This document shows, piece by piece, positions 11,963 to 54,481 of a stretch of DNA of 64,000 bases. The notes beneath the pieces are model-generated. The model was not told the DNA's origin and searched no databases. It worked only from the letters and a program-made list of their open reading frames with translations. The stretch lies in IMG/VR virus record IMGVR_UViG_3300042308_001616, positions 124,001-188,000 of that record; one strand, written 5' to 3'. The position numbers and the translations under genes are program-made. Position 1 is the stretch's first letter. The number at the start of each line of letters is the position of its first letter.

Positions 11963-12364
11963 ATGATGGATACCATTAAGTACTTTTTTTATAAAATCGT
12001 AAAGGTCGTACTAATAATATTAGTTATGGCATTTATATATGCTGCGTGTGATAGTATCTTCGGAAAAGAAGATCCTAAGAATACCTGGTATTGGGCAGAC
12101 CAATGTCTACAAGACAGAATAACATACCGTGCCTGGAAACAAAATGGTGTCTGGTCATTCGAACTTGCCAACGATATGAAAGGTGATGTTATGATTACTT
12201 ATGAGATTATCGGTGATAAGATCGATGAACATACACAGATAATAAAATCTGGTGATTCATCTGGTATATTACCGGTGGATTCAGAGGAATGTCCAAAGGT
12301 AACAATTGTTTCAGTTGTTATGATGAAGTATGGAAAACCAGACTACATACTAAATTGTGAATAG
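11963..12364 (+). CDS. Membrane-anchored or lipoprotein hypothetical, possible paralog of the preceding gene
   Basis: Hydrophobic N-term, YAA-C; 'NGVWSFELAN' vs 'DGTWVVGIKN'. Confidence 0.55.
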   Translation: MMDTIKYFFYKIVKVVLIILVMAFIYAACDSIFGKEDPKNTWYWADQCLQDRITYRAWKQNGVWSFELANDMKGDVMITYEIIGDKIDEHTQIIKSGDSSGILPVDSEECPKVTIVSVVMMKYGKPDYILNCE

Positions 12365-12705
12365 TGATGAAATTAGACGAGACAGATGAAATAATAAAAG
12401 ACAAAATCAACGAGATAATGTCTGGTGAGTGGGACTCGAACTTCGAACCCGAGCAACTCAATATGCTGAAACGTAGGTCTTTCTTACTTAATAATATTAG
12501 CCAGAATGGTGCAGACATAACATTTGAGTGGAACGGAAACAAAATAAACGTACACAACAGCGACATAGTCGAACTGAGTATGTTCTGGGCTGACACATTC
12601 AACCACATCGTGTCGTCAATCATGTCGGATCCAATTTTCATAAACGCATATAACGCGTTCTCTCGTGAATGGAAGATAGACGGACTTCTCAAAAATAAAA
12701 AATAA
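12364..12705 (+). CDS. Hypothetical protein with C-terminal RExKIDxLL motif
   Basis: ORF in operon; ends 'REWKIDGLLKNKK'. Confidence 0.65.
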   Translation: MMKLDETDEIIKDKINEIMSGEWDSNFEPEQLNMLKRRSFLLNNISQNGADITFEWNGNKINVHNSDIVELSMFWADTFNHIVSSIMSDPIFINAYNAFSREWKIDGLLKNKK

Positions 12706-12709
12706 TGCA

Positions 12710-14086
12710 ATGATAAAACTTATTATATTTGATATGGATGGAGTTCTCGTAAATGCCAAAGAAATACACTACGAGACGTTGAATAACGCCATAGAGTTGA
12801 TTGTTGGTAAAAAATTCACAATAGATTTTTCAGAACACCTATCAACGTACGATGGTCTAAAAACTACACAGAAGTTAGATATGTTAAGTGAGAAGAAAGG
12901 ACTTAATAAATCAGAACATCAGAAAATATGGGACATAAAACAAAAACTAACACAAAAAAGTATTGGTGAAATTGGTCAGAATAACGAAATTATTTCATTA
13001 GTAAGTTGGCTCAAAGAAGAAGGATATATACTAGCGTGTTGTTCAAACTCAATAAGGAAAACAATATTTTTAGCATTATCTAGGATTGGTATTATAGAGT
13101 ATATGGACCTAATACTCTCCAATCAAGATGTACAGAGAGGGAAACCATATCCAGAAATTTACTGGAAAGCAATGAGTAATTTAGGATACTTACCAGAAGA
13201 AACACTAATAATTGAAGACTCACCTACAGGATTATTAGCAGCACATAGATCCGGTGCCAATATACTCAGAGTTGATAATCCATCACAAGTTCGAAAATCA
13301 AAAATCGATGAAGTAATATCAATGATAAATAAAACAAATAATATGAAAAACCCAAAGTGGAGAAATGATAAATTGAACGTACTCGTACCGATGGCCGGTG
13401 CAGGTACTCGTTTCGAAAAAGCAGGATATACATTTCCAAAACCTCTAATAGAAGTAAACGGAAAACCTATGATACAAGTTGTTGTAGAGAACTTAAACAT
13501 AGATGCAAACTACATATATGTCGTACAAAAAAGTCACAGAACTAAATACAATTTAGACACTCTTTTGAATCTAATAACTCCAAATTGTAGAATAGTGGAG
13601 GTAGAAGGAATAACAGAAGGTGCGGCATGTACTGCACTTCTCGCTAAAGAATTAATTGATAACGACGAACCACTTTTCTTTGCTAACTCAGATCAGTTCG
13701 CAGAATGGGACTCAAATGAGTTTATGTACAAAATGACAGAGACCAATTGTGATGGTGCAATTGTCACTTTCAAAGCTACACACCCAAAATGGTCATTTGC
13801 CAAATTAGATGATAATGGATTTGTTACAGAAGTTGCGGAAAAAAATCCTATCTCAGAAAACGCAACGGTCGGATTCTACTATTGGAAGAGAGGTTCGGAC
13901 TTTGTGAAGTATGCAGAGAGTATGATAGATAAAGATATACGTGTAAATAACGAGTTCTATGTTTGTCCTGTTTTCAATCAAGCGATTGATGACGGTCTAA
14001 AAGTCAGAACATTCGAAATTAGTAGAATGTGGGGACTCGGAACACCCGAAGATTTAAACCACTACCTAAATCATCATACAGAATGA
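12710..14086 (+). CDS. HAD-family phosphatase fused to sugar nucleotidyltransferase
   Basis: N-term DMDGVL, KPYPEIY, IEDS; C-term PMAGAGTRF, PKPLIEV, NSDQ, EKNPIS, GLGTPEDL. Confidence 0.9.
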   Translation: MIKLIIFDMDGVLVNAKEIHYETLNNAIELIVGKKFTIDFSEHLSTYDGLKTTQKLDMLSEKKGLNKSEHQKIWDIKQKLTQKSIGEIGQNNEIISLVSWLKEEGYILACCSNSIRKTIFLALSRIGIIEYMDLILSNQDVQRGKPYPEIYWKAMSNLGYLPEETLIIEDSPTGLLAAHRSGANILRVDNPSQVRKSKIDEVISMINKTNNMKNPKWRNDKLNVLVPMAGAGTRFEKAGYTFPKPLIEVNGKPMIQVVVENLNIDANYIYVVQKSHRTKYNLDTLLNLITPNCRIVEVEGITEGAACTALLAKELIDNDEPLFFANSDQFAEWDSNEFMYKMTETNCDGAIVTFKATHPKWSFAKLDDNGFVTEVAEKNPISENATVGFYYWKRGSDFVKYAESMIDKDIRVNNEFYVCPVFNQAIDDGLKVRTFEISRMWGLGTPEDLNHYLNHHTE

Positions 14087-14532
14087 TACTCATATCACAC
14101 CGCGGAAACACCAACGGAAGGCTCGATGATAAAGAGAACGAACCAACTTATATAGATTTTGCAATAAAAAAAGGATTCGACGTCGAGATTGACGTATGGT
14201 ACAAAGACAAAATGCTTTGGCTAGGACACGACGAACCACAATATGGTGTGGACTTCAGATGGTTCCGTGACAGACTAACGAAACTATGGGTACACTGCAA
14301 AAACACAGCAGCAGTGGTTTATTTCAAAGATTGTGGATACGACGTCAACTACTTCTGGCACCAGGAAGACGACCTAACACTAACATCCAAAGGTCACATC
14401 TGGGCTTACCCAGGTAAGCAACCAATAAAAGGATCAATCGCAGTGATGCCAGAGATACACGGTGACGACCTTTCAGAATGTCTGGGTATCTGTTCGGACA
14501 ACCCAGAACTTTACTCACAAACCGAAGAGTAA
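14083..14532 (+). CDS. Glycerophosphodiester-phosphodiesterase/PLC-like small protein
   Basis: 'ISHRGN...EIDVW...LGHD...WVHCKN...GICSD'; ATGA-coupled to the upstream gene (start revised from 14029). Confidence 0.75.
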   Translation: MILISHRGNTNGRLDDKENEPTYIDFAIKKGFDVEIDVWYKDKMLWLGHDEPQYGVDFRWFRDRLTKLWVHCKNTAAVVYFKDCGYDVNYFWHQEDDLTLTSKGHIWAYPGKQPIKGSIAVMPEIHGDDLSECLGICSDNPELYSQTEE

Positions 14533-14909
14533 TGAAAACATACGTAACACATACACACCATTTCACATACGAATGTTTGATGATATTCTATGTAAAGCCG
14601 TACTCTAAACTTGTCGACGTAAACATAGCAAACAACATGGTCTATGCTACGTTCGAATCACCAATAGAACCGATGGATTGTAACAAGAAATTCGAGATAA
14701 AACTCGTGAATACGTTCGCAGTAACACCATTTGAACTCTCCTTCTATGGTTCTGTAAAGAAGTCTGATATCAATATTATAGTCACATCTTCTGGTGCCTC
14801 TGCACAATTCTCACCCGAACTACTCGAGACTCTTTATATGGTCTACTACACCGAGTCGAAGCAACCGGAGGAGATACGTGACGAAAGGATTGATGAAGTT
14901 TTAATGTAA
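14532..14909 (+). CDS. Hypothetical protein with C-terminal RDERIDEVL motif
   Basis: TAATG coupling (start revised from 14478); C-terminal motif. Confidence 0.65.
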   Translation: MKTYVTHTHHFTYECLMIFYVKPYSKLVDVNIANNMVYATFESPIEPMDCNKKFEIKLVNTFAVTPFELSFYGSVKKSDINIIVTSSGASAQFSPELLETLYMVYYTESKQPEEIRDERIDEVLM

Positions 14910-14938
14910 AATGCCACTCTTAGAGTGGCATTTTTTTT
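14908..14938. terminator. Intrinsic terminator between convergent genes
   Basis: AAATGCCACTCT-t-AGAGTGGCATTTTTTTT. Confidence 0.8.
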
Positions 14939-15189
14939 AGTTTTATTTTTAAATCACCAGTTCCTTTTATAAGTCGGTGATAAACACCCATTGGTATGAA
15001 TACTTCTCCTTCTATTTTCATCGGAAGTTGATTATCTAATTGAATACCCCAATCAGTATCACCAATTGATTCAATTACACGAGATTCAAAATCTCGATGC
15101 CACATAAACTCACCGGAGTCAGTATCCTGACTAAACTCTCTGATAAACGTATTATCACTTATTTTAGTTTCTTGAAATGGAAGTGTCAT
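14920..15189 (-). CDS. Small cupin-like protein
   Basis: 'MWHRD.ESR...WGIQLDNQLP...IPMGVYHRLIKG'; ATGA-coupled start MTLPFQETK. Confidence 0.65.
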   Translation of the reverse strand: MTLPFQETKISDNTFIREFSQDTDSGEFMWHRDFESRVIESIGDTDWGIQLDNQLPMKIEGEVFIPMGVYHRLIKGTGDLKIKLKKMPL

Positions 15190-15190
15190 A
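15158..15190. repeat. 33-bp direct repeat, copy 1 (start of cupin gene)
   Basis: cttattttagtttcttgaaatggaagtgtcata; 1 mismatch to 15614-15646. Confidence 0.9.
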
Positions 15191-15605
15191 CACCAACCCA
15201 CGCTTTAATTTTATCCTGTAATTCACTAACAGCAACCGCTCTATGAGCACCGTCTATAATTCTATAATCCTCATCGACAACTATTGGTGGATAATCACCG
15301 GTTTCCTCTATAATACTTTTGTATTCCAGGACACTATCCTCGTTGATATAAAACTCATCCAAGTCTATTTGAGATATAGATAATTCAGTAAGTTTGTATA
15401 TTTCAAATTCTTCTATTCGGTCACTCAAATCACCATCTATAAAAGCACCTTCATAATCATCGTGTAAATATTGAACATAGTTGTAGATATATTCCTCTGA
15501 GATTTTATCACCAATCTTGGCATTGTACCAACATTTATTCAAATCAGCTCTACTCTTCAACTTCTCGTTTGCTTCAAATATTTTATATGTCTTCAAATGT
15601 CTCAT
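15186..15605 (-). CDS. ParB/Srx-like domain protein with capsid-targeting-like leader
   Basis: 'YPPIVVDEDYRIIDGAHRAVA'; starts MRHLKTYKIFEANE. Confidence 0.75.
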   Translation of the reverse strand: MRHLKTYKIFEANEKLKSRADLNKCWYNAKIGDKISEEYIYNYVQYLHDDYEGAFIDGDLSDRIEEFEIYKLTELSISQIDLDEFYINEDSVLEYKSIIEETGDYPPIVVDEDYRIIDGAHRAVAVSELQDKIKAWVGV

Positions 15606-15613
15606 ATAATTCT

Positions 15614-15646
15614 CTTATTTTAGTTTCTTGAAAAGGAAGTGTCATA
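15614..15646. repeat. 33-bp direct repeat, copy 2 (orphan copy of cupin gene start)
   Basis: cttattttagtttcttgaaaaggaagtgtcata; encodes a truncated MTLPFQETKI on the minus strand. Confidence 0.9.
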
Positions 15647-16445
15647 TTTTAAACTTCGTTTTATTTAACATATCTATTATATAATCTGAATATTGTTCAG
15701 CTGTAAACTTTTTACCATATTGAGATTTCATTTTCTGAAACTGATCATTTACTCTATTTGCAACCATTAGACCAAAGCTATTTTTATCTCTACCTTTTGC
15801 AGTATCTATTCCAAAATCATAAGCTCTTTTCTTAGTTTGTATACCAGTTTTCTTTAACCAATTATTATATACTTCTAATACTTTATTTTGGTCATTATCT
15901 TTATACCAATAAAACTTTAGATGGTCATTATCTTCGATAAAATGTTTAGCATCATATCCACATTTGAAAGAAATTGCTGAGTTTTTTAATTCACCTTCTG
16001 TACAAGATTTGTAGAAGTCACTTATAAGAGTTCCGAGGCCATTGAACCATCTTTTCAAGTTGTCTTCACTTTTTTCAAATGTTACATAAAAGTTTTTTGT
16101 TATTTCCTGATCACCTATTACTTCTTTTTGTTTAAGACTTGAGTTATAATTTACACCAAACCACTCATTTTGGTCATCCTGTCCAATTTTCATTACCCCA
16201 CTTTTATACTTAGCTAAGTATTCATCAAGTGTTTTTTTCCAACTAGTAGATACTTTTTGAATAAAATCATTAAGTTCTGTATGTTCTTCTTTTCCTCGAA
16301 TTATATTTTGATAAATCCAAGAAGAAAAATCCATATTCGCACCATCTAAGCTACTATTTATAAAATTGATTAGTTTTTTTCTTCTCTCATCACTTATTGT
16401 GAAAAATGAGTTTTCAAATATTTTATATGTTTTTAAATGTTTCAT
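15642..16445 (-). CDS. Hypothetical protein with leader MKHLKTYKIFEN
   Basis: Start revised from 16490; leader nearly identical at DNA level to that of 15186..15605. Confidence 0.7.
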   Translation of the reverse strand: MKHLKTYKIFENSFFTISDERRKKLINFINSSLDGANMDFSSWIYQNIIRGKEEHTELNDFIQKVSTSWKKTLDEYLAKYKSGVMKIGQDDQNEWFGVNYNSSLKQKEVIGDQEITKNFYVTFEKSEDNLKRWFNGLGTLISDFYKSCTEGELKNSAISFKCGYDAKHFIEDNDHLKFYWYKDNDQNKVLEVYNNWLKKTGIQTKKRAYDFGIDTAKGRDKNSFGLMVANRVNDQFQKMKSQYGKKFTAEQYSDYIIDMLNKTKFKI

Positions 16446-16456
16446 AAATCTTTTTT

Positions 16457-17029
16457 TTACCAAAAGCCGGGATAGGTACGGCCGTTCCACAAATGCGAGT
16501 AGCGGTTAATTCTGCATGCCCAGTACCCTGCTTTTGTTTTATCTTTTTTATCTTTACAATTATGACGCGCAGAAAATGCCTTTCTTGCCTTAGGATTAGA
16601 TACCTTAGCAGTTAATCCACCATGAACATCACCAAAAGCAATCTTTTTTACTTTACCGGTCTTAGGATTCTTAACATAAACGTGGTACTTCTTAGTTCCA
16701 CCTCTCATAGGATGGTTCAGTTTAACTTCTCTACCTTTGTATTCCGCCTCATTCATCTCTTCAACAGTCTCCATCGGAAGATCCAACGGAACTATCTCAC
16801 CATCAAATTCGACAAACTTACCTAAATCTGTACTCTCAAAAAGATATTTATCCAATCCACTAAATATAACTTCACCAGAATCAAATAATAATCTAGCCTC
16901 TTTTATGAGTTCAAGAAAGGAATCAGATCCAGGTCTAAAAACATTTTCAACAACAGATATATTATTATCAAGGTGATAATTCAATTTCTCAGAAACTAAA
17001 AAATTATTGAATTTCTTTATATAATTCAT
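16457..17029 (-). CDS. Conserved viral protein with basic C-terminal domain and leader MNYIKKFNNF
   Basis: 'KKYHVYVKNPKTGKVKKIAFGD...ARKAFSARHNC...AGYWAC' recalls basic domains shared by jumbo phages and giant viruses (family name uncertain). Confidence 0.65.
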   Translation of the reverse strand: MNYIKKFNNFLVSEKLNYHLDNNISVVENVFRPGSDSFLELIKEARLLFDSGEVIFSGLDKYLFESTDLGKFVEFDGEIVPLDLPMETVEEMNEAEYKGREVKLNHPMRGGTKKYHVYVKNPKTGKVKKIAFGDVHGGLTAKVSNPKARKAFSARHNCKDKKDKTKAGYWACRINRYSHLWNGRTYPGFW

Positions 17030-17037
17030 AATGTTTG

Positions 17038-17502
17038 TTATACATTTTTAATAAAGTCTATAAAAGGAACAACACCAGACACATCAGTTGTTTGAGTTGT
17101 TTCTTCACCACCATCAATATTTTCACATTCACAAGGATTACAATCACAACCAGAACAACACTCATCATCACTAGGGTTTATAGCACCCATAAAAATTTTA
17201 GAAGGATCTAAAACATCTTCTTCCGGTGCCACTTCATCAACAGATATAGAAATTGTAAAGTCTTCAAACTTTTTAATTGATTTCTTCAAACCAGGTGTTG
17301 TTACCTGTATTTCTTTTTTGAGTTTTTTTTCTGCAGCCTTTGGCATCTCCTCTAAATCAGAAACGAATGGTGCTTTACTAACAAAACCTTCTGTTTCATC
17401 AACTTCTTTATCTAATAAGGAATCTACATCAAACTCAATCTCAATATTTTTATCCTTAGCAATCTTAGCCTTAGCGGCCTCATGGAATCTATTTATGTGC
17501 AT
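17038..17502 (-). CDS. Acidic hypothetical protein with Cys cluster and internal IKKFEDF motif
   Basis: 'ECCSGCDCNPCECE'; WATATATA box upstream. Confidence 0.65.
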   Translation of the reverse strand: MHINRFHEAAKAKIAKDKNIEIEFDVDSLLDKEVDETEGFVSKAPFVSDLEEMPKAAEKKLKKEIQVTTPGLKKSIKKFEDFTISISVDEVAPEEDVLDPSKIFMGAINPSDDECCSGCDCNPCECENIDGGEETTQTTDVSGVVPFIDFIKNV

Positions 17503-17523
17503 AGTATTAAATTATTTGTAGTG

Positions 17524-17560
17524 TATATATTATTACCGAGATATGCCAATTTTATATATA
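17524..17560. promoter_or_regulatory. Back-to-back divergent WATATATA boxes
   Basis: Minus AATATATA 17524-17531; plus TATATATA 17553-17560. Confidence 0.55.
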
Positions 17561-17581
17561 AGCTAAACAAAAGGTCTTTAG

Positions 17582-23377: not shown

Positions 23378-23382
23378 ATAAG

Positions 23383-23412
23383 AAATGCCACTTTTATAGT
23401 GGCATTTATTTT
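23383..23412. terminator. Bidirectional intrinsic terminator
   Basis: AAATGCCACT-tttat-AGTGGCATTT. Confidence 0.8.
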
Positions 23413-23413
23413 T

Positions 23414-23528
23414 CGGCGGTCGCCATTGTGTTTATGTGAGGCACACTGAGAAATGTTTATCGGATCCTGCCTTTCCATGTTCGACGACCCTAAGGTGGTC
23501 ACGCTCTCCATTACTGGACCACCAACCT
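23414..23528 (-). ncRNA. Putative structured RNA element (family not recognised)
   Basis: GC-richer non-coding stretch with stems GGTGG/CCACC, TCCA-GTAA-TGGA, GGTCGTC/GGCGACC, AGGCA/TGCCT. Confidence 0.35.
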
Positions 23529-23529
23529 A

Positions 23530-24177: not shown

Positions 24178-24202
24178 ATTATATTTTTTTATTTTTTACA
24201 GC

Positions 24203-24454: not shown

Positions 24455-24456
24455 AA

Positions 24457-35124: not shown

Positions 35125-35351
35125 TGTATACAATAAAAAGTAACGATACGAGGATAAATACCACATTTGAAAGAATATCAAAAGGAATTTCATTTGATGA
35201 AAAACTCGTACCATATAGTATAACTTTTCTCAACGAAATAATAAAATACTTCGAAGACAAAGAAGACTTCGAGAAGTGTCAAACGGTAATGAATGCACTG
35301 AACGATAAAACACACGAAAAGGCATACACAAAATGGACACAAAATATTTAG
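35124..35351 (+). CDS. Small protein with UVR-like helical hairpin
   Basis: 'IIKYFEDKEDFEKCQTV'. Confidence 0.55.
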   Translation: MYTIKSNDTRINTTFERISKGISFDEKLVPYSITFLNEIIKYFEDKEDFEKCQTVMNALNDKTHEKAYTKWTQNI

Positions 35352-35968
35352 AAAATATAATAAATGAATGTGAACGGCTCGCCCAGGAGACTGGCGAGCC
35401 TCACTTCGTTCTGGACTGGAAAACTTTACACGAGATAAAGAAGAAAACTGCCGAAAATAAAGAGGATAAAAGAGAAGCTGATCTCGAAGAGATCCTCGAC
35501 GAGCAGGAATATGAAATAGGTGACTGGACAACCGTTCAACAGATGCCATCTATGGAAATATTCTACGATAGTGTTTCGAAGCTCACCGAGCAAAAGGACA
35601 GAATGCTTTGGGCCATACGAAGACTCGAGAGGCTAGGTTTCAAAAAAAACTCAATATTTGACCTAATCGACGAGGAAGACAGAGACGTATTACAAACGAA
35701 CTTCAATATGGAGTTCTCGATGAAGATTGAACTCGAATACGGAGACTTCATAAGCGCCACAATATCACCGAACCTACTTACCAAAATCAAACATTTCTCC
35801 ACCATCGATAGCTCCAAAACAACAATCGGTCACGAGATGATATTCAGGGAGATATACCACGGATACCTGATAACGGAAGACATCATCGAGGCAATCACCA
35901 ACAAAGTGAAAGCCGAGTCGATGAAACCAATCGTAAGGGATATCAAAATAAACGAGCTGTTAGACTAA
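35333..35968 (+). CDS. Hypothetical protein with C-terminal RDIKINELL motif
   Basis: 211-aa ORF; motif at end. Confidence 0.7.
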   Translation: MDTKYLENIINECERLAQETGEPHFVLDWKTLHEIKKKTAENKEDKREADLEEILDEQEYEIGDWTTVQQMPSMEIFYDSVSKLTEQKDRMLWAIRRLERLGFKKNSIFDLIDEEDRDVLQTNFNMEFSMKIELEYGDFISATISPNLLTKIKHFSTIDSSKTTIGHEMIFREIYHGYLITEDIIEAITNKVKAESMKPIVRDIKINELLD

Positions 35969-36643
35969 GTAGTTCCTAAGTGCAGATCCAACATCGGGCG
36001 ACTTATTCTCCTTATTCATATACTCGAAGAAACAACGATGTGACAAAATGTCCTGTACCTCGTTGACACCAAACCTGCTGATACTTTCGAAAACTTGGCA
36101 ATCGTGATGAGTTATGTAAATCTGGTCATCGAAAGACCAGGGTGTTCCATATGCAGAGTCGTAAACTGTCCTCGACCTCAAACTTTGCCTTAACGGACTC
36201 AGATCCGACACCGGTAAATAGTCAAAACTTATGACAAGATTATCGCGTACTGCCTTTTTAACATAATCAAACTTCCATTTAACATCATAAAGAGAATAGA
36301 ATAACCAACTAAAGGGATGTTCTCGGAAAACACGAGCTATCTTATCACCATATTTATCAATCGGTATGAGATTCACCTTTCCCCTTTCACATATGACAAG
36401 TCTATGACCGACATCTTGACCATTCTCATAGAGCTTACCGCAGTCGAACGCATCTAGATCTAGGTAGGAAAGCCTCTCCTTCAGCTCGACTAACCGGTCG
36501 CCGTCCATATCCTCGCACTGCCAAACCTGAATGTCTTGCCAAGTCCGTACCAGCACAGGCGACTCCGAAACCGAAAGGATCAAATCCTTTATCTCCGAGT
36601 CACGTTCCGACCCGAAATACTCAAACATCTTAATATACCTCAT
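35960..36643 (-). CDS. Hypothetical protein with leader MRYIKMFEYF
   Basis: AATATATA 4 nt upstream of ATG; weak similarity to 56054 and 56761 genes. Confidence 0.7.
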   Translation of the reverse strand: MRYIKMFEYFGSERDSEIKDLILSVSESPVLVRTWQDIQVWQCEDMDGDRLVELKERLSYLDLDAFDCGKLYENGQDVGHRLVICERGKVNLIPIDKYGDKIARVFREHPFSWLFYSLYDVKWKFDYVKKAVRDNLVISFDYLPVSDLSPLRQSLRSRTVYDSAYGTPWSFDDQIYITHHDCQVFESISRFGVNEVQDILSHRCFFEYMNKENKSPDVGSALRNYLV

Positions 36644-39326: not shown

Positions 39327-39941
39327 ATGAAGCATATTAAAAAATACGAAAGCTTTTCTGTTAATGAGGAATTACAATTGTTTAATTTTGCTGCAGCTTT
39401 GAAAAAATTAGTTTCTATGTCAGCGGATGAAATCAAAGCAAAGTTTCCTGGTATAGATAAAGCTGTTGAAAAACCTGAGGTTAATGCAGTTTTAAGTAAT
39501 CAAGATATAGATGCCGCAGATTTCAGTGATCCAAATGCAAGTGGACAATTAAGTAGTGTTGCAGGTGATTTAGAAAAACAAAGTGAATCTAAAATCAATG
39601 AAAATATTTTCATTGATAAGTTAAAAAGTATTTGGAATAAAGTAAAAGCACCTGCAGCATTAGTTTCTGCTGCGGCTGCATTAGCTCCAATCTTTATGGG
39701 TATGAAGGATTTTGTCACTAACGTTCCAGCTGATACTTTCAAATTTCTTGGTTTCAACGATTATGATGCGGGTGGTCAAAGTTTTACTGGATTAGGTTTT
39801 GCTGCAATGGTTTATGCAGTTGCTGCATTAGCATTTTTTGTCAAAAAAGGTTTAGTAGATAAACAAGTTGCTGCTGAAACTACTGCTCCTAAAAAACCAG
39901 TCAATGTGGTTAAGAGAGACAAATATGGTAGACCAATCTAA
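39327..39941 (+). CDS. Leader-bearing (MKHIKKYESFSVNE) protein with two hydrophobic helices
   Basis: Leader; second 'KINE' site; Ala-rich TM-like segments. Confidence 0.7.
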   Translation: MKHIKKYESFSVNEELQLFNFAAALKKLVSMSADEIKAKFPGIDKAVEKPEVNAVLSNQDIDAADFSDPNASGQLSSVAGDLEKQSESKINENIFIDKLKSIWNKVKAPAALVSAAAALAPIFMGMKDFVTNVPADTFKFLGFNDYDAGGQSFTGLGFAAMVYAVAALAFFVKKGLVDKQVAAETTAPKKPVNVVKRDKYGRPI

Positions 39942-39985: not shown

Positions 39986-39992
39986 ATTTATT

Positions 39993-41548: not shown

Positions 41549-41577
41549 TCTATCAAATAAAAAAATAAATAAAAACA

Positions 41578-42189: not shown

Positions 42190-42309
42190 AATTTATAACT
42201 GATAAGTAATATAAGAACAAATACATAAAACCATATATAATTATGGGAAGAAAAATAAGAGCCATCCATAGATGGCTCTATTTATGTGAAACAAAAACAA
42301 TCCAAAATA

Positions 42310-42807: not shown

Positions 42808-43163
42808 TAAAATTTAGACTAATATTCGACTGGTACGTCAACGACTTTTTCGATAAGGTCAAAATTTTCGAAGCAGGACATATTTTTTTACCATCAGAAG
42901 ATGGTAATTATATAATCGAAAATCCAATAAATGGTGGAAAAACAAAGATGGATATCGAACAGATGAGAAATGCTAAAGATGGTTCAGTACTTATGTTTGA
43001 AGAGATAGAAGAACAGGAAATCAATATAATTATCGATGAGGTACCAGAGGAAAAGGATCTCGAGATAAAGAACTGGCGCATACAACTCGACGTGAAGACG
43101 TCACTTAGAAATCTCAAAAAGATTGAGGTTTTCATAAAAGAAAATATACAGGAATTACTATGA
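42804..43163 (+). CDS. Hypothetical protein
   Basis: ATGA-coupled on both sides. Confidence 0.65.
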   Translation: MIKFRLIFDWYVNDFFDKVKIFEAGHIFLPSEDGNYIIENPINGGKTKMDIEQMRNAKDGSVLMFEEIEEQEINIIIDEVPEEKDLEIKNWRIQLDVKTSLRNLKKIEVFIKENIQELL

Positions 43164-44218: not shown

Positions 44219-44222
44219 GTAC

Positions 44223-44230
44223 TATATTTG
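44223..44230 (+). promoter_or_regulatory. Bacteroidota-type -7 promoter box
   Basis: TATATTTG 3 nt before ATG 44234. Confidence 0.4.
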
Positions 44231-44233
44231 AAT

Positions 44234-44659
44234 ATGAGTGCCGATAGAGATTTTGTAAAGATAATCACCGCCGAGTGGACCACACTGATTGAATCGGTCG
44301 AGGTAGATGGTTTCAACCGACCAGTGGAGAAAGTCAGAAAACACATAGATTTCGAAAGGTGTTACTTAAGCTTTATTCTTGAAGACCTTTCACAAGATGA
44401 TAGGTTTATACCAATAGACGAGAATACAAAAAAGACCTACCGCAAATGGGGCGACAAACTCGTACGTATATTTGAAAACATACTAGGTGAAAAAGATAAG
44501 ACAGTACCAAATAGTTCTTTTACAGAATTCAAATTCCGTTCCGGATGGGGTGAGAGTCTGGAATACTCAGTATGGAGAATAAGTATTGTTTTCAATATAC
44601 CTGGTATGATGGCTAGACATAGAGAGATGAAAATAGACGAACTTCTGAACGGTAAATAA
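44234..44659 (+). CDS. Hypothetical protein with C-terminal REMKIDELL motif
   Basis: First ATG at 44234; motif at end. Confidence 0.7.
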   Translation: MSADRDFVKIITAEWTTLIESVEVDGFNRPVEKVRKHIDFERCYLSFILEDLSQDDRFIPIDENTKKTYRKWGDKLVRIFENILGEKDKTVPNSSFTEFKFRSGWGESLEYSVWRISIVFNIPGMMARHREMKIDELLNGK

Positions 44660-44693
44660 ACTATTTTGGAATAGAGATATGAATATATACTCT

Positions 44694-46340: not shown

Positions 46341-46341
46341 A

Positions 46342-49209: not shown

Positions 49210-49224
49210 AGACTATATATACAC

Positions 49225-49262
49225 AAAACCGCCACTTGTCGGTGACAGGTAGCGGTTGTTTT
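49225..49262 (-). terminator. Intrinsic terminator
   Basis: Minus strand CCGCTACCTGTC-acc-GACAAGTGGCGG-TTTTG. Confidence 0.6.
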
Positions 49263-49276
49263 TATGTAAAAATATC

Positions 49277-49873
49277 TTACTTTTTTTTCTTTTTCCTTTC
49301 TTTGGCAGCCTTTGCCTTTGTCCATAATTCAGAGTCTGCTTTCCTTGCACCACCTGAACCAGTAATGAAACTATTCACTCTACCAAATGCCCATTGATGT
49401 TGTGCAACACCAGGTCTGTGTCCAGCGTTCCACGCTTGCATTCCTTTAGAGAAAACTTTTCTAAGAATACCTACCGGTATTCCAGATGCTTCAGATTTCT
49501 TTTTTAATGATTTGGCAACACCTGATTTTTTTTTTTCATCGATACTCTCTAACCAGTAGAGCTCATCGTTGAAAGATTCGAAGCAAAGTATCCTACTCTC
49601 CTCGAGAGAGTCATCTATCTCTTCATCATTCCTTTTATCAACACCTTTGTTGTGTTCAACATCGTCTGCCATAGCTTTGTAAAGTTTCGTAATCTCTTCT
49701 TTATTCATTGGTTTTCCGTCTTCATCACCATCGATGAAACCATCAGGGAAACCACCAACAATCTCTATCTCATCCTCAAGTTCTTCAACACTTTTACCTT
49801 TGGTCTTACCGAAGTCGTCAATATTTTTCCATCGGTTTATTTCCGAATCTTTAAATTCTCTGAGGTATCTCAT
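49277..49873 (-). CDS. Leader-bearing protein with DUF5824-like C-terminal domain
   Basis: 'SGIPVGILRKVFSKGMQAWNAGHRPGVAQHQWAFGRVNSF'; starts MRYLREFKDSE; internal ILCFESFNDE. Confidence 0.7.
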   Translation of the reverse strand: MRYLREFKDSEINRWKNIDDFGKTKGKSVEELEDEIEIVGGFPDGFIDGDEDGKPMNKEEITKLYKAMADDVEHNKGVDKRNDEEIDDSLEESRILCFESFNDELYWLESIDEKKKSGVAKSLKKKSEASGIPVGILRKVFSKGMQAWNAGHRPGVAQHQWAFGRVNSFITGSGGARKADSELWTKAKAAKERKKKKK

Positions 49874-49882
49874 ATCCTTTAT

Positions 49883-50452
49883 TTATTTTTCTTTATCACC
49901 AAACATCTTTTGGTATGCTTTGGTTGCAGCAGACTTTTTCGTCTTCACCCTTTTACCTTCACCACCTTTTCCAGATGTATAATCAGCATCCCAATCTTTT
50001 TTATATGTCTTTTTGCCTCTAAAAGTGTCAATCTCTTTTTTCATCTTACCTGGGTTTTTAGTAAGGTATTTTCCAGGTATTTTATGACCTTTATAGCGTT
50101 GAGATTTTGACTTCTCTTCTACACCTTCTGGCATTATAACTTTTAGGTCAGATTCTATAAGCTCCATAGCATCCTCTAATGAGTCTACATTTTTTTTGAA
50201 GTCTACTCTTCCACCGAAAGTTTTTTCAACAAATAAATCATCTACATCGAGATCATATTTTACGGCAACATCTTGCCAAACAAAATCGAGAACTACATGA
50301 TGATCGTCAGTACTACTCCATTTGTATACAAACTCACCCACAACAGATTTAGAGACTAAGTCCCTTATTCTCTCCATACGTTCCTCGACGTAATCTGAGC
50401 CCACGAAGCCACCGCCCTGAACGAACTCGTAGAATTTCTTTATTTTTGACAT
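49883..50452 (-). CDS. Leader-bearing protein (MSKIKKFYEF) with basic C-terminal domain
   Basis: 'KIPGKYL...KTKKSAATKAYQKMFG'; late box 4 nt upstream. Confidence 0.7.
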   Translation of the reverse strand: MSKIKKFYEFVQGGGFVGSDYVEERMERIRDLVSKSVVGEFVYKWSSTDDHHVVLDFVWQDVAVKYDLDVDDLFVEKTFGGRVDFKKNVDSLEDAMELIESDLKVIMPEGVEEKSKSQRYKGHKIPGKYLTKNPGKMKKEIDTFRGKKTYKKDWDADYTSGKGGEGKRVKTKKSAATKAYQKMFGDKEK

Positions 50453-50509
50453 ACACTATATATAAAGTTTTAACTGTAAACAAATCAATTTTGTGTAAAT
50501 ATATTCTAT

Positions 50510-51289
50510 ATGGCAACTAAAACTAAACTAAAGCTAAAGAAGGAATGTTTCTCGGATTTCGTTGACAAACTCACCGACTTAACAGCTATATCAGACACTA
50601 TCAAACTTAAGATTGATAACAAACACATTATGATGTACTCAACACTGGGTGGACAGGTGTTATTGGCATTCAAAAACTATCTTTTGGACACAAAAGAATA
50701 TTTAGATTATGAGGACCTAGAGTATTCCATTGATGTGGTGATAGTGAATGCTAAAAAATTCGTGAAGAACTTAAATTTTTTGATGCAATCAGATAAACTA
50801 ACAATAGATATAACACATAAAGCATCCCCAGATGATGAATCTGTTATGATTGCCAGAGGAATACAAATAAATGGTGGTAGACTTAAAGTAAATTGGATAG
50901 CAGGTGAACATTATGAGATAAGGGACATTGATAAGTCTATTCTTCAGGAACGACTGGATATACGATTACGTAAGTGGAACTTTATAATAGAGAAGGCGGA
51001 CTTTACAGATATTAAAAAATTGAGTACTATAAATGATGGAAAACTTCTAAATATATCTGCAAGTAATGGTAAGGTAACCATATCAGAAAGTGCCGCTTGG
51101 GAATTACAAATAGCAGATTGTGACCCAGATAAAAACTCGAATATGATACTTAATAAAAAGTTTTTGAAGTCTATAGACGATAGTAAAGATGTCGATTTTA
51201 GCATATTTGAAAATTTTATGCTAGTAAAAGATGAGAACACAAACCTAATGCTTAGTTACGAACAAGATTTTTCAGAAGAAGATGAATAA
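50510..51289 (+). CDS. Probable sliding clamp (gp45/PCNA-like)
   Basis: 259 aa, two-fold alpha/beta pattern, just upstream of DNA polymerase; no hallmark motif. Confidence 0.45.
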   Translation: MATKTKLKLKKECFSDFVDKLTDLTAISDTIKLKIDNKHIMMYSTLGGQVLLAFKNYLLDTKEYLDYEDLEYSIDVVIVNAKKFVKNLNFLMQSDKLTIDITHKASPDDESVMIARGIQINGGRLKVNWIAGEHYEIRDIDKSILQERLDIRLRKWNFIIEKADFTDIKKLSTINDGKLLNISASNGKVTISESAAWELQIADCDPDKNSNMILNKKFLKSIDDSKDVDFSIFENFMLVKDENTNLMLSYEQDFSEEDE

Positions 51290-51608
51290 TAGGAATTACA
51301 ACAGACAAAAACCTAACAGGGCACCATATATTATGTTTATTATAATACTTGCTTTATTGTGGCTTGTAAGAGATTTACATAAAGATGCAATTGATGCAGA
51401 CAATACACTAGAGAAAATTAGAATCGAAAGTACACATACTGATACACTTCTTAGAATTAAGACTAACGAAGTAGATTCACTTATTGAAGTGGTTGAATGG
51501 TATAGAAAGTTAGAAGAAAATAAAAAGAATACATCAAAGAAAATATCAGTAAAAACTAACAAAGTTCATAAACAGGAAACTATCGTTAGTAACGATACAA
51601 TAAAATAG
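51282..51608 (+). CDS. Single-TM coiled-coil protein (i-spanin-like topology)
   Basis: Basic N-term, TM helix, coiled coil. Confidence 0.5.
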   Translation: MNNRNYNRQKPNRAPYIMFIIILALLWLVRDLHKDAIDADNTLEKIRIESTHTDTLLRIKTNEVDSLIEVVEWYRKLEENKKNTSKKISVKTNKVHKQETIVSNDTIK

Positions 51609-51614
51609 TAATAT

Positions 51615-53045
51615 ATGACACGTGATGAAAAAATAAATAAAATAGAAGATCTAAAAAACAAAGCAACACAATTAAAAAGAGAGGTTGATTATTATAACGC
51701 AATGCAGACTGCACTAAAACTTGTGTTAAATGGATCTTATGGTGCGTTCGCCACGCCCTACTTTGTTTTATTCAACAACAATGTGGCATCAACTATAACA
51801 GCACAAGGTCGTGACCTAACAAAGACGATGGACAAAGTGAATGAGGACTACTGGTACAAACAGTGGCACTTAGATTACGAACTTCACCGTAGGTTATGTG
51901 TAACCAACGTAACACAAATACCTATTGATGAACCTGTATCAATTTATGCAGATACAGACTCACTTTTTGTTTCGTTTCTTCCTGCGATAAACCACTCGAA
52001 CTGGAAAGACCTAATATTCAATAAAAAAAGAATTGAGTCTATTAAAAAACCATTCATAGTATTAGCTAAAGAAATATGTCAATTTGAAAACGAAAATTGT
52101 TTAGGTAAGGCAGAGACTATTGAAGAACTAAAAGAATTACTTACTACTGAATACCAAGAGGTTCTAATAGATGGTAGGTTCATACTCGATCGAGAACTAA
52201 AAAAAATACTCACATCCGGAGTTTTTACATGCGAACCTAGATGGAACTGGGCAAGAGAATTAGATTACATTCACGGTATTGACCAAATGAGATATGGAGA
52301 TTATTTCAAAAAGTGTCTTGAAGAATACGCTGGTGGGTTTGGTGTCGAGAATAAAGAAGACTTCGAACTTGAGAGAGTCTCTGAATCAATCATATCACTT
52401 GCTAAGAAGAAGTATATACAACACGTCGCATTCGAGGACGGAATACCATACGAAAGACTTACATATCTATTCCCGAAGGGAGTTGAGTTAGTAAGGAGAT
52501 CGACTCCTGCATTCGCACGAGATAAAATTATTAACATTGTTAAATACCTCTTTGAGAATTCCGACACGTTCAACATAAAAGACCTATTGAAATTAGTTAA
52601 ACAACTAAGGAAAGAGTTTGAACTGGCAGATATTGATGATATATCAATGCAAAGTTCGTGTTCTAAGTACGACCAGAAAGTAATTGATGATAAGACACTT
52701 CCTCTGAAGTTTGTGAATGGTGCACACTTTGCAGTAAAGGCCAGTGCATATCACAACTACCTTATCTCACAAGATAAAGAGATACAGAGAAAATACGAAC
52801 CAATCAAATCCGGAACAAAGATTAAGTACTACTATTGTAAGAATCGTTCAAACGGAGATATGTTTGCATACATAAGAGGTCAGTACCCAATTGAGGTGGC
52901 ACCAGAGATAGATTTTGACACACAATTTGAAAAATCTATTCTTTCACCAATCAATACTATTATTGAACCATTAGGTATGCCAGAAATAACAGCTCGATTA
53001 TCAGTTGTAATGGATATATTTAGCGGTTTCGGTTTCGGGAAATAG
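51615..53045 (+). CDS. Family B DNA polymerase, C-terminal subunit (split gp43)
   Basis: Motif B 'QTALKLVLNGSYG', 'ITAQGR', motif C 'YADTDSLF', 'KKKY', 'KGVELVRRSTP'; lacks exonuclease and motif A. Confidence 0.92.
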   Translation: MTRDEKINKIEDLKNKATQLKREVDYYNAMQTALKLVLNGSYGAFATPYFVLFNNNVASTITAQGRDLTKTMDKVNEDYWYKQWHLDYELHRRLCVTNVTQIPIDEPVSIYADTDSLFVSFLPAINHSNWKDLIFNKKRIESIKKPFIVLAKEICQFENENCLGKAETIEELKELLTTEYQEVLIDGRFILDRELKKILTSGVFTCEPRWNWARELDYIHGIDQMRYGDYFKKCLEEYAGGFGVENKEDFELERVSESIISLAKKKYIQHVAFEDGIPYERLTYLFPKGVELVRRSTPAFARDKIINIVKYLFENSDTFNIKDLLKLVKQLRKEFELADIDDISMQSSCSKYDQKVIDDKTLPLKFVNGAHFAVKASAYHNYLISQDKEIQRKYEPIKSGTKIKYYYCKNRSNGDMFAYIRGQYPIEVAPEIDFDTQFEKSILSPINTIIEPLGMPEITARLSVVMDIFSGFGFGK

Positions 53046-53076
53046 AAAAGCACAGATTATTCTGTGCTTTTCTATT
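53041..53076. terminator. Bidirectional intrinsic terminator
   Basis: AATAGAAAAGCACAGA-ttat-TCTGTGCTTTTCTATT. Confidence 0.85.
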
Positions 53077-53885
53077 TATGCTTTATGAACAAAGTTCGTT
53101 TTTGGAACCAGATAGTGACCCTCCATAGTAATAACTCCTTTGCCTCTGAAAATGTAGCTAGGTTTTAAATTATCAACAGACATAACCACAAAATAATCAG
53201 TCTTCATTTCTGTGTAGTCACCGGAAATAACTACTTTGTAATACTCAACACCATCTAATATTGTTTCACTAACATTATCCAGTGTCTTAACCTGTATTGT
53301 GAAATCTTTTCCGTTATGATTGAACATTAGGTCTATACTTTCTAATGCATCTTCCTGTTTAGTGGTAGGCCTACGAATCTGTACGTTTATACCCTTCGAC
53401 TTTGCATATTCTGTAAAGAACACCTCTGCATCTGACTCCTTCTGCTGACCTAAATCACTCTTACCTGACACCGTTGCATACAGACTCCAGAAGAACTTAT
53501 TCGTAGGTTTGAATAAATCCGTGTTTCTCTCTAAGTAATCGAGTAAATCCTGTGCGTTATCTACGACGTGTCCATCCGCAAGTGCTTTGTAGACTATCCT
53601 ATGTAGTACCGTTATGTTGTTCGGCATCATCGCTACATACTCCGTATAGATTTGACCCTGTGGTGTACTCACCGTACGTATGTCGTAAAATCTTTTACCA
53701 GGTGTATATTGATGGAACACCGGCTGTGACATCAACGAAGCTTTTATTGTTTTCCTTATTTCTCCCAACATATCACCATCTACATAGATACTGGCAATAA
53801 CACTACCATTCTTATCTTTTATAAGTAAAGTTATCGGTTTTTTTGGCTTTTCTACATATTGTGAAAATTCTCTAATGTATATCAT
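53076..53885 (-). CDS. Putative PD-(D/E)XK nuclease-like protein with leader MIYIREFSQYVE
   Basis: 'G..KESDAE...QEDALESIDLMF...TIQVKT'. Confidence 0.55.
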   Translation of the reverse strand: MIYIREFSQYVEKPKKPITLLIKDKNGSVIASIYVDGDMLGEIRKTIKASLMSQPVFHQYTPGKRFYDIRTVSTPQGQIYTEYVAMMPNNITVLHRIVYKALADGHVVDNAQDLLDYLERNTDLFKPTNKFFWSLYATVSGKSDLGQQKESDAEVFFTEYAKSKGINVQIRRPTTKQEDALESIDLMFNHNGKDFTIQVKTLDNVSETILDGVEYYKVVISGDYTEMKTDYFVVMSVDNLKPSYIFRGKGVITMEGHYLVPKTNFVHKA

Positions 53886-53890
53886 CCAGG

Positions 53891-53912
53891 TATATATTAT
53901 TTCCGATATATA
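53891..53912. promoter_or_regulatory. Back-to-back divergent ATATATA boxes, each 5 nt from an ATG
   Basis: Minus AATATATA 53891-53898; plus GATATATA 53905-53912. Confidence 0.55.
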
Positions 53913-53917
53913 CTTTT

Positions 53918-54139
53918 ATGAAGAATGACGAAAAATACCCACTCTACCTGGCCTGGCTAGAAGACCAACTGAAGGCAGGAAAGCTTAACCGAGGAACTTG
54001 GTCACTGAGGAAGATGAGTCGACAAGCATTCGACGAATTCAAACAAAGACTCGATGATGGTCAGTTTGAGAACAAAGTAGTACAGGTAAATCGTGATAGT
54101 AAGATAGATGACCTTTTCGACGGTTTCGACTTTGATTGA
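53918..54139 (+). CDS. Small protein ending RDSKIDDLFDGFDFD
   Basis: Shared motif. Confidence 0.65.
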   Translation: MKNDEKYPLYLAWLEDQLKAGKLNRGTWSLRKMSRQAFDEFKQRLDDGQFENKVVQVNRDSKIDDLFDGFDFD

Positions 54140-54151
54140 AAATAAACTTAT

Positions 54152-54481
54152 ATGGTAAGGCTTATAGAGACATACGAACACGAGAGTTATGACATAATCT
54201 TCTATGAGGGTATCGACTTTGATATGATACGTAATCATAGTGACGATTCTTCGAATTTTTTAGTCTTTTATATAGAATCTTGGAAATTAGAAGTCGAAAG
54301 ATGGAAGAGAGATAAGAAGATAGACGAACTACTCGGTTGTGAGAAGGATTTATTCGATCCTGAACTGATAAAGAAGAATACCGTAGCAATTTATTTGACT
54401 AACGGATACTTAGAACCAACACACCAGGCAATAAAAAAGAAACTCATCGAACCACATAGCTGGAAAAACTGGCTTTGTTAA
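54152..54481 (+). CDS. Small protein with internal RDKKIDELL motif
   Basis: Shared motif. Confidence 0.65.
   Translation: MVRLIETYEHESYDIIFYEGIDFDMIRNHSDDSSNFLVFYIESWKLEVERWKRDKKIDELLGCEKDLFDPELIKKNTVAIYLTNGYLEPTHQAIKKKLIEPHSWKNWLC

Follow-up and report, generated by a model that had tools for sequence, protein, structure and literature searches.

A C-terminal tag shared by small proteins of a group of very large freshwater phages

Why should otherwise unrelated small phage proteins end in the same nine-residue helix? The initial annotation of a 64,000-nucleotide stretch of a phage genome (positions 124,001 to 188,000 of IMG/VR record IMGVR_UViG_3300042308_001616; hereafter the window) pointed to six copies of an R-[DE]-x-K-I-[DN]-[ED]-L-L amphipathic helix on unrelated proteins, and proposed that it is a docking or sorting peptide for a common partner such as the clamp, a protease or adaptor such as the encoded ClpP, or a scaffold. 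The observation holds, and it proves to be much larger than first described. A group of very large freshwater phages places the helix R-D/E-x-K-I/L-x-x-I/L-L (or an ending in L-G-I) at the end of 20 to about 150 otherwise unrelated small proteins per genome, where it behaves like an address label; our literature searches found no description of the motif. The interpretation is partly supported. A modular, protein-level tag on unrelated small proteins of a non-virion class is well documented here, conserved in orthologs while the rest of the protein diverges and mutually exclusive with the N-terminal leader, which is what a docking or sorting peptide for a common partner predicts; its reader was not identified.

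All six motifs are present in the window (Table 1), and five of them lie 1-6 residues before a stop codon. In six frames of the whole 248,751-bp genome, the pattern R[DE]x[KR]I[DN]x[LIVM][LFIM] gives 10 matches, 9 of them within 12 residues of a stop, while third-order Markov simulations give 0.175 on average (maximum 1). Among called proteins there are 7 matches, compared with 0.02 in residue shuffles. A frequency no higher than in composition-matched shuffles had been put forward as grounds for abandoning the idea, as had a lack of conservation in orthologs, and neither is what we found. Two further statements of the initial annotation require correction. The restriction of the motif to the plus strand applies only to the window, since 2 of the 10 strict matches genome-wide (3 of the 11 looser ones) are on the minus strand, and both strands are used about equally in LR756502. 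The N-terminus of the DNA polymerase subunit, which had been listed as a further copy, lacks the final hydrophobic pair and is kept in LR756502 but not in LR745206 or LR756504, and is therefore probably not an instance of the tag.

Table 1. Tag copies, look-alikes and candidate partners in the window
Position	Strand	Feature	Sequence	Gene	Remarks
12664..12690	+	Tag, 4 residues before the stop	REWKIDGLL	ORF 12364-12705 (113 aa)	No known family
14877..14903	+	Tag, 1 residue before the stop	RDERIDEVL	ORF 14532-14909	Followed by a terminator-like hairpin and a convergent gene, so no downstream gene is coupled to it
35936..35962	+	Tag, 1 residue before the stop	RDIKINELL	ORF 35333-35968 (211 aa)	Tag conserved in 23 metagenomic homologs and in the 28%-identical LR756502 ortholog (RDIKIESIL)
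44621..44647	+	Tag, 3 residues before the stop	REMKIDELL	ORF 44234-44659 (141 aa)	A TATATTTG box lies directly upstream of the gene
50510..51289	+	Sliding clamp (two-domain PCNA/gp45-like fold)			Candidate partner
51621..51644	+	Look-alike at the polymerase N-terminus, probably not a tag	RDEKINKI (in MTRDEKINKI)	DNA polymerase subunit	
53004..53042	+	Polymerase C-terminal tail	VVMDIFSGFGFGK	Polymerase	Resembles the RB69/T4 clamp-binding tails; differs from the general tag
54092..54136	+	Tag fused to an acidic-aromatic tail (tag at 54092-54118)	RDSKIDDLF + DGFDFD	ORF 53918-54139 (73 aa)	Hybrid of the tag and a polymerase-like clamp-type tail; orthologs end in RDKKIDDIFDGIG (LR756502) and RDQKIDDIFDELDF (LR745206)
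54308..54334	+	Internal tag, 48 residues before the stop	RDKKIDELL	ORF 54152-54481	Also internal in the LR756502 ortholog (RERKINNIL, 54 residues before the stop); probably a tagged protein fused to a further C-terminal piece
62098..62781	+	ClpP protease (PF00574, E 2e-65)			Candidate reader or effector of the tag, not tested

The tag is not confined to this genome. LR756502 and LR745206 carry about 145 tagged ORFs each, LR756504 carries about 60 with a charge-swapped variant (R-K-x-K-I-E-x-L-L), and many IMG/VR contigs carry arrays, whereas LR756501 and Lak-A2 have none. Counting only the last 20 residues of ORFs, there are 110+48, 119+26 and 67+2 tagged ORFs in LR756502, LR745206 and LR756504, respectively, where about 11+1 would be expected from internal rates. 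De novo discovery of C-terminal patterns recovered the tag at p 1e-60 to 1e-84 and revealed the LR756504 variant, which a strict DNA pattern requiring D/E at position 2 had missed; a second, stop-anchored DNA pattern was too narrow to be informative. Two endings, I-L-x-stop and L-G-I-stop, are interchangeable.

Could such a repeat arise by chance, or be a nucleic acid signal at gene ends, such as a recombination linker, a translational coupling element or a terminator? The tag's codons are A/T- and purine-rich, and many tagged genes are followed within a few bases by the next start codon. However, enrichment is 50-fold or more over shuffles, Arg is encoded by AGA, AGG and CGT and Leu by CTN and TTA, information at the third codon position is near background, and the substitutions seen are I/L/V and D/E/N. 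In addition, two of the five C-terminal copies in the window have no co-directional downstream gene. We consider this explanation refuted by the codon analysis. Constraint is instead on the protein: in 55 between-genome homolog pairs the body is 33% identical, the tag core 71% and the x positions of the tag 30%.

A second possibility is that the helix has no external reader and is the only conserved remnant of one exploded paralog family, kept for folding, self-association or helix capping. Tagged genes do lie in tandem arrays, with about 50 of 66 consecutive ORFs tagged at 620-642 kb of LR756502, a few small paralog clusters exist, and L-x-x-L-G-I fits the helix C-cap pattern of Schellman motifs. 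Nevertheless, 362 tagged ORFs fall into 310 BLASTP clusters, 275 of them singletons, and the bodies range from 50 to 730 aa with no detectable similarity outside the motif, although profile-profile comparison was not done. No Pfam, PHROG or NCBIfam family is matched by more than one of 67 carriers, and a feature search of a tag region in the ESM Atlas returned only unnamed viral clusters. An AlphaFold model of the 35333-35968 protein (pLDDT 67) gives the tail low confidence, so it is not confidently packed on the body, and a Foldseek search of the PDB with this protein found nothing below E 0.1. An invariant Arg and Lys are not needed for capping, and the coordinated D-to-K change across about 60 proteins in LR756504 is hard to explain without a common constraint. 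A single paralog family is rejected on the BLASTP clusters and family searches, without profile-profile comparison, and the wider idea of a helix without a reader seems unlikely.

The tagged genes also form a class of their own. The phage promoter AATATATA, which precedes the sheath gene and giant putative structural genes, lies within 40 nt of the ATG in 0-4% of tagged genes, compared with 55-73% of genes whose products carry an N-terminal leader. Gaps upstream of tagged arrays carry it in 0-6% of cases against 20-36% elsewhere, and their top motif in LR756502 is TATATTTG. TTTG-N19/20-TAnnTTTG is a real bipartite signal here and matches the Bacteroides -7 consensus (PMC4747536). The initial annotation had stated that tagged proteins never carry the N-terminal leader; this is confirmed and extended, as across four genomes 0 proteins carry both tags where about 10 would be expected by chance. 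An early assignment of the tagged class rests on promoter motifs, and it becomes noisy when promoters are propagated along operons (115 A-type, 52 B-type and 194 unassigned), too noisy to assign timing to each gene. In the 249-kb genome, moreover, the carriers are scattered among metabolic and replication genes rather than sitting in clean early arrays. Of metatranscriptome sequences, only a few contigs of 151-207 nt lay on the region, which is not proof of transcription.

These findings bear on whether the tag might load proteins into the head, as a C-terminal counterpart of the T4 capsid targeting sequence, of encapsulin cargo-loading peptides or of scaffold C-termini, so that the small proteins would be packed into the huge head and injected with the DNA. 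T-even internal proteins are a precedent for diverse bodies sharing one conserved targeting peptide (PMC3012670), the L-G-I ending recalls encapsulin cargo peptides, and the bodies are hypervariable, as expected of injected anti-defence cargo. Against this, the tagged genes lack the promoter that precedes the sheath gene, a separate N-terminal leader resembling the T4 signal already exists and is never combined with this tag, and carriers are not next to head genes, lying instead in arrays of small genes or among metabolic and replication genes. We regard a capsid-loading role as unlikely.

Is the partner perhaps the sliding clamp? The protein encoded at 50510-51289 is indeed a sliding clamp, confirmed by fold, and two carriers sit next to the polymerase and clamp genes in this genome and in LR756502. 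The hydrophobic residues at tag positions 4, 7 and 8 have the spacing of the PIP-box, Q-x-x-[ILM]-x-x-[FY]-[FY], and also resemble the T4 tails SLDFLF/Y. However, position 1 is D/E/N (K in LR756504) rather than Q, and positions 7-8 are aliphatic in over 90% of copies. The phage's own polymerase ends in a different tail, MDIFSGFGFGK (MDIFGGSGF and MDIFGGFK in relatives), without R-D-x-K, and no replication or repair enzyme carries the tag, nor do carriers have replication domains. The suggested likeness to T4/RB69 clamp-binding tails holds for 53918-54139 only, whose DLFDGFDFD resembles the polymerase tail and the RB69 tail SLFDMF, and does not extend to the general tag. A multimer prediction against the clamp had been suggested as a check; one complex of the clamp trimer with the 44234-44659 protein was modelled, scored 0.00 and returned no answer, which counts neither way and leaves binding at the interdomain hydrophobic pocket undecided. 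It would also be odd for 100-150 clamp clients all to be ORFans of another gene class, and LR756501 has a clamp homolog but no tag. A clamp-binding role appears improbable, though it is untested and not excluded.

Our preferred reading is that the motif is a modular C-terminal recognition handle, a short amphipathic helix with an invariant face of R0, K3, I/L4, I/L7 and L8 (positions i, i+3, i+4, i+7 and i+8), ending either in 0-6 polar residues or in a Gly-capped L-G-I, and appended to a large, fast-turning-over set of small proteins in a clade of huge phages predicted to infect Bacteroidota. In this view, all carriers would be read by one shared partner and would form a class distinct from the late or virion class, most likely the early host-takeover class. 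What the analysis demonstrates is the existence of the tag, its statistics and protein-level conservation, its modularity and clade distribution, and its exclusion from N-tagged proteins and from genes driven by AATATATA; early timing, a single shared partner and the identity of that partner are our inference.

Of specific partners, it is tempting to speculate that the handle couples these proteins to Clp-type proteolysis, although this is no more than a tentative best guess. It would act either as a common degron that lets the phage clear its early proteome on schedule, or as a tether that makes each small protein an adaptor for that machine. ClpP is genuine here and is present in 2-3 copies in the tagged huge relatives, and the larger relatives add a ClpC-like unfoldase, which in LR756502 has a VGF loop and no Clp_N domain. 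Many tags end in aliphatic residues at the very C-terminus: 28 of 63 in LR756504 end exactly at LL, and most LGI-type tags in the LR756502 array end exactly at G-I. In this genome and its two closest relatives, by contrast, most copies are followed by 1-6 mostly polar residues, and some copies sit 11-55 residues from the end, so the position expected of an ssrA-like degron, at the extreme C-terminus with a free carboxylate, is seen in part of the set and does not settle the matter; no binding was shown for any partner, and reporter stability was not measured. A degron also rarely needs an invariant Arg and Lys. This genome record holds no AAA_2 unfoldase, ClpP and a Clp-type unfoldase are also present in Lak-A2, which lacks the tag, and LR756501 has the unfoldase but neither ClpP nor the tag. 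Across the six genomes compared, neither ClpP, nor the ClpC-like unfoldase, nor the clamp tracks the tag cleanly, and no McsB-like arginine kinase was found.

An equally tentative alternative is that the handle docks to some other single hub, phage- or host-encoded, such as RNA polymerase, SSB or a phage protein specific to this clade, and that each small protein would be concentrated at, or would bring a target to, that hub. The evidence for modularity and constraint applies here too, the invariant Arg and Lys next to a hydrophobic stripe suggest a specific protein groove, and the charge swap at tag position 1 in LR756504 (D/E to K) suggests a co-evolving partner. As candidate partners, 27 genes of this genome are conserved in the three tagged relatives and were not found in the sampled parts of the two untagged genomes, too many to test. 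No candidate was singled out, and none of the known-function proteins in these genomes carries the tag, so there are no functional hints.

It is possible, though far from certain, that these phages run a proteome-wide addressing system of their own, in which one genome-encoded C-terminal helix would mark essentially the whole fast-evolving early or 'arsenal' proteome, up to about 150 proteins, for a single phage-controlled machine. Perhaps this is a timer that hands them to the phage's own ClpC-like/ClpP protease, or a hub that concentrates them at one cellular site, while a second, N-terminal label would mark the late, head-directed proteins. That would be a two-label protein sorting scheme in a bacterial virus. 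Most genes of huge phages are unannotatable ORFans, and here one 9-10-residue label is shared by 10-18% of ORFs in several 630-kb genomes and by many environmental contigs, under much stronger constraint than the proteins on which it sits. Finding the single partner would say something about hundreds of unknown proteins at once, and could reveal coordinated disposal, tethering or localisation of an early arsenal. The tag could also give a portable tool for work in Bacteroidota and, together with the two promoter types, marks a gene class in these genomes.

Terminal peptides that address diverse proteins are not unprecedented. The T4 capsid targeting sequence is likewise the only thing shared by a diverse, fast-evolving set of small phage proteins with roles in defence (PMC3012670). 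The T4 signal, however, is an N-terminal leader of about 10 residues on late-made proteins and is removed by the prohead protease, whereas this tag is C-terminal, sits on a gene class without the late-type promoter and is far more numerous; the separate N-terminal leader of these phages is the better analogue. PIP-box and T4/RB69 clamp-interaction tails share the C-terminal position, hydrophobic residues at i, i+3 and i+4 and flanking basic and acidic residues, yet the tag has no Gln and no aromatic pair, and has an invariant Arg three residues before the Lys. C-terminal degrons and tethering peptides of AAA+ proteases (the ssrA tag, the MuA C-terminus, the SspB ClpX-binding tail, and the HslU and HbYX docking tails) are also short, portable and often end in aliphatic residues, but the tag has no sequence match to any described degron and is genome-encoded on many ORFs rather than added to a few substrates. 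Encapsulin cargo-loading peptides, Gly/Leu-rich C-terminal peptides that address otherwise unrelated proteins, have a different consensus, and their cargo genes sit next to the HK97-fold shell gene. Finally, in the poxvirus ankyrin/PRANC F-box-like proteins, dozens of variable proteins share only a short C-terminal motif that plugs them into one cellular machine; those are eukaryotic ubiquitin-ligase adaptors with a roughly 40-residue domain and homologous ankyrin bodies, whereas here the motif is 9-10 residues and the bodies are unrelated.

The window is bases 124,001-188,000 of a single linear IMG/VR virus record of 248,751 bp, with a GC content of 35.7% and a completeness of about 90% as estimated by CheckV, which encodes a tail sheath and a split family-B DNA polymerase. 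The polymerase subunit is 73% and 68% identical to those of the uncultured huge phages LR756502 (642 kb) and LR745206 (635 kb), respectively, and is more distant from LR756504, LR756501 and the Lak phages. These belong to the 'Mahaphage' clade, whose genomes over 634 kb were predicted to infect Bacteroidetes (PMC7162821). The same DNA occurs in lake and river metagenomes from more than a dozen studies (19 DNA runs listed, from at least 13 studies, for window positions 50500-56400). One freshwater metatranscriptome also holds short contigs on the polymerase gene and within the gene that carries an internal copy of the tag, although this is not proof of transcription. The coordinates of the features discussed here are collected in the table below.

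Positions of the features considered in this part of the analysis (window coordinates unless another sequence is named)
Feature	Position	Strand	Remarks
Split family-B DNA polymerase subunit	51615-53045
Polymerase C-terminal tail	53004-53042		VVMDIFSGFGFGK
Sliding clamp	50510-51289
ClpP	62098-62781
Tagged gene with AlphaFold model	35333-35968
Tagged gene followed by hairpin	14532-14909
Terminator-like hairpin	14910-14945		GCCACTCTTAGAGTGGC followed by T8; directly after the tagged gene, between convergent genes
73-residue tagged protein	53918-54139		ends in RDSKIDDLFDGFDFD
Tail of the 73-residue protein	54110-54136		DLFDGFDFD
Metatranscriptome contigs inside the gene with the internal tag	54214-54420
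Gene with N-terminal leader	15186-15605	-
Gene with N-terminal leader	15642-16445	-
Gene with N-terminal leader	35960-36643	-
Gene with N-terminal leader	39327-39941	+
Gene with N-terminal leader	54498-55034	+
Gene with N-terminal leader	56054-56761	-
Phage-type promoter-like boxes (examples)	1868, 17553, 30022, 50457		AATATATA-type
Box upstream of tagged gene	about 44220		TATATTTG
610-residue tagged protein (outside the window)	genome 239,985-241,817 (L225:3985-5814)		LGI-type ending, FLRDKKLKALGIK
ClpC-like unfoldase of LR756502	LR756502 440,544-442,664 (L024:544-2664)
Array of about 60 small genes	LR756502 620,000-642,428	-	most genes tagged
Array of about 25 small genes	LR756502 1-19,000	+	most genes tagged

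The observation made in the initial annotation, that small proteins share a short C-terminal helix motif, holds: all six of the peptides it listed are where it placed them, with five lying 1-6 residues before a stop and one being internal. A failure to exceed shuffled sequence had been named in advance as grounds for dismissing the motif, and this is not what we found. A strict pattern searched in six frames of the whole genome gave 10 hits, 9 of them within 12 residues of a stop, against 0.175 expected in third-order Markov simulations, and in called proteins it gave 7 hits against 0.02 in residue shuffles. Copies use different synonymous codons (AGA, AGG and CGT for Arg, and CTT, CTG, CTA and TTA for Leu), and over 71 copies codon position 3 carries almost no information beyond what the amino acid forces, so this is a protein-level motif and not a DNA repeat. 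Two of the five C-terminal copies in the window have no co-directional downstream gene, which argues against a translational-coupling signal. Explanations at the nucleic-acid level, and chance, are excluded.

The phenomenon is far larger than the initial annotation reported. A degenerate DNA pattern for the motif hits LR756502 37 times (0 in the reversed-pattern control) and LR745206 34 times (1 in the control), and a de novo search of these genomes for patterns enriched in the last 16 residues of ORFs recovered the tag as by far the top signal in LR756502 (p 1e-84). LR756504 has a variant, R-K-x-K-I-[E/D/K]-x-L-L, often at the very C-terminus (p 1e-62). A long minus-strand array in LR756502 (620-642 kb) revealed a second ending, R-[DN]-x-K-L-x-x-L-G-I at the stop, and about 50 of 66 consecutive small ORFs there carry one ending or the other. 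The two long diverging arrays of LR756502 have hardly any internal promoter motifs and look like a hyperplastic region in which genes turn over quickly; even LR756502 and LR745206 share few of these genes. In contrast, LR756501 and Lak-A2, from each of which 400 kb was sampled, show no such enrichment. One scan of IMG/VR found many further viral contigs of 18-476 kb and 24-38% GC with arrays, for example 13 tags in 13.4 kb.

Tagged ORFs counted in the last 20 residues of ORFs of at least 50 aa, with expected numbers in parentheses
Genome	LL-type	LGI-type
This genome	20 (4.0)	4 (0.3)
LR756502	110 (10.7)	48 (1.4)
LR745206	119 (9.2)	26 (0.9)
LR756504	67 (10.9)	2 (0.8)

The bodies that carry the tag are unrelated, whereas the tail is constrained. 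With the tag removed, 362 tagged ORFs from four genomes fall into 310 BLASTP clusters, 275 of them singletons, and among 67 carriers scanned no Pfam, PHROG or NCBIfam family is hit by more than one. Nor is the tag confined to very small proteins, as a 610-residue protein of this genome and proteins of 622 and 731 residues in the relatives are tagged, none of them with a Pfam match. Lack of conservation in orthologs was the other outcome that had been set out as counting against the motif, but in 55 homologous pairs between genomes the median body identity is 33%, while the tag core (positions 0, 1, 3, 4, 7 and 8) is 71% identical and the tag's x positions are 30% identical. Homologs can switch between the I-L-x and L-G-I endings, so the two endings are interchangeable. 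For the window gene 35333-35968, 23 metagenomic homologs and the 28%-identical LR756502 ortholog keep R, K, I/L and L-L. The tail of its AlphaFold model forms short helices of low confidence (pLDDT about 52) and is therefore not confidently packed on the body. The conserved residues R0, K3, I/L4, I/L7 and L8 fall on one face of a helix. The possibility that the helix is a structural remnant without any reader is, in our view, unlikely.

Two promoter-like signals dominate the intergenic DNA of these genomes, and together they could be used to sort the genes of this clade into expression classes. The first, a phage-type AATATATA, lies close to the ATG and precedes the sheath gene, the clamp gene, the 1931- and 1525-residue genes, and 55-73% of genes whose products start with a second shared label, the N-terminal leader M-[KR]-x-[IL]-[KR]-x-[FY]-[EDN]-x-F (for example MRYIKLFEEF). 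This leader, which recalls the T4 capsid targeting sequence, is on 8 proteins in this genome and on 33-50 in each huge relative, and its genes mostly have the AATATATA box within 40 nt of the ATG. The same box precedes only 0-4% of C-tagged genes, and gaps upstream of tagged arrays carry it in 3%, 6% and 0% of cases, against 36%, 35% and 20% of other gaps; the most frequent 8-mer in those gaps in LR756502 is TATATTTG. The second signal is a host-type TAnnTTTG: of 325 intergenic boxes, 102 have TTTG exactly 23-24 nt upstream, giving the bipartite Bacteroides-type promoter TTTG-N19/20-TAnnTTTG (the -7 consensus is as quoted in PMC4747536). The plus-strand tagged array of LR756502 starts behind such a promoter. 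In addition, no protein carries both the N-terminal leader and the C-terminal tag, where about 10 would be expected. We infer that C-tagged genes belong to a separate class, probably early and host-polymerase-driven. This inference is only moderately strong, because the picture blurs when promoters are propagated along operons and because the carriers in the 249-kb genome are scattered among other genes. Loading of the tagged proteins into the capsid is a further possibility that we regard as unlikely.

The initial annotation had suggested a clamp, the encoded ClpP or a scaffold as the common partner. Its clamp candidate is a genuine two-domain sliding clamp, with an AlphaFold model of pLDDT 83 and Foldseek matches to PCNA, the beta clamp and T4 gp45 at E about 1e-10. 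A multimer prediction against this clamp had been proposed as a check of the docking idea, and the one complex modeled, the clamp trimer with the protein encoded from 44234, returned no answer; the partner chain's own fold had low confidence (pLDDT 40-42), and the result is not evidence either way. The phage's polymerase ends in MDIFSGFGFGK (MDIFGGSGF and MDIFGGFK in relatives), which is like the RB69 ending SLFDMF and unlike the tag. The tag has PIP-box spacing, but it lacks the Gln and the aromatic residues, and no replication enzyme carries it. The 73-residue protein next to the polymerase, however, ends in the tag fused to a polymerase-like tail, an arrangement that its orthologs keep, and its tail shares with the polymerase tail the pattern [IL]-F-x-G-F-x-F, like RB69 SLFDMFDF. 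This small protein may be a clamp client or competitor. Thus the comparison drawn in the initial annotation with T4/RB69 clamp-binding tails is reasonable for that protein only, and clamp binding as the general role of the tag seems improbable.

With regard to the Clp machinery, the encoded ClpP is genuine, and the tagged huge relatives have 2-3 ClpP copies. LR756502 also encodes a ClpC-like double-AAA+ unfoldase with a UVR motif and a VGF (ClpP-docking type) loop but no Clp_N domain, so it has a complete phage-borne Clp protease, whereas this 249-kb record has ClpP and no such unfoldase. However, Lak-A2 has both ClpP and an unfoldase without the tag, and LR756501 has the unfoldase without ClpP or the tag. 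No McsB-like kinase was found. A comparison of gene content across genomes leaves 27 further candidate partners, which are those of the 66 genes shared by this genome and the three tagged relatives that were not found in the sampled parts of LR756501 or Lak-A2; none of them was tested.

Taken together, the data fit a modular recognition handle read by one shared partner, on a rapidly turning-over set of small proteins that are probably early. The interpretation offered in the initial annotation, a docking or sorting peptide for a common partner, is therefore partly supported. The excess of the motif, its constraint at the protein level, its spread over unrelated bodies and its separation from the N-terminal leader are results of the analysis, while the early timing and the single reader are inferences from them, and the partner itself was not identified. 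Among specific readings, we rank first, tentatively, a coupling to Clp-type proteolysis, in which the tag would act as a degron or an adaptor tether, but it is about equally possible that another, unidentified hub is the reader.

None of the libraries searched (Pfam, PHROGs and NCBIfam) contains the motif, and the papers searched, including the huge-phage survey and a comparative study of jumbo phages (PMC7162821, PMC7824862), do not mention it. Terminal address labels are themselves familiar, but the scale seen here has not been described for a phage. The closest conceptual precedent in phages is the T4 capsid targeting sequence, in which diverse internal defense proteins share only a short signal (PMC3012670). 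That signal is N-terminal and late, and the phages studied here have their own N-terminal leader for that role.
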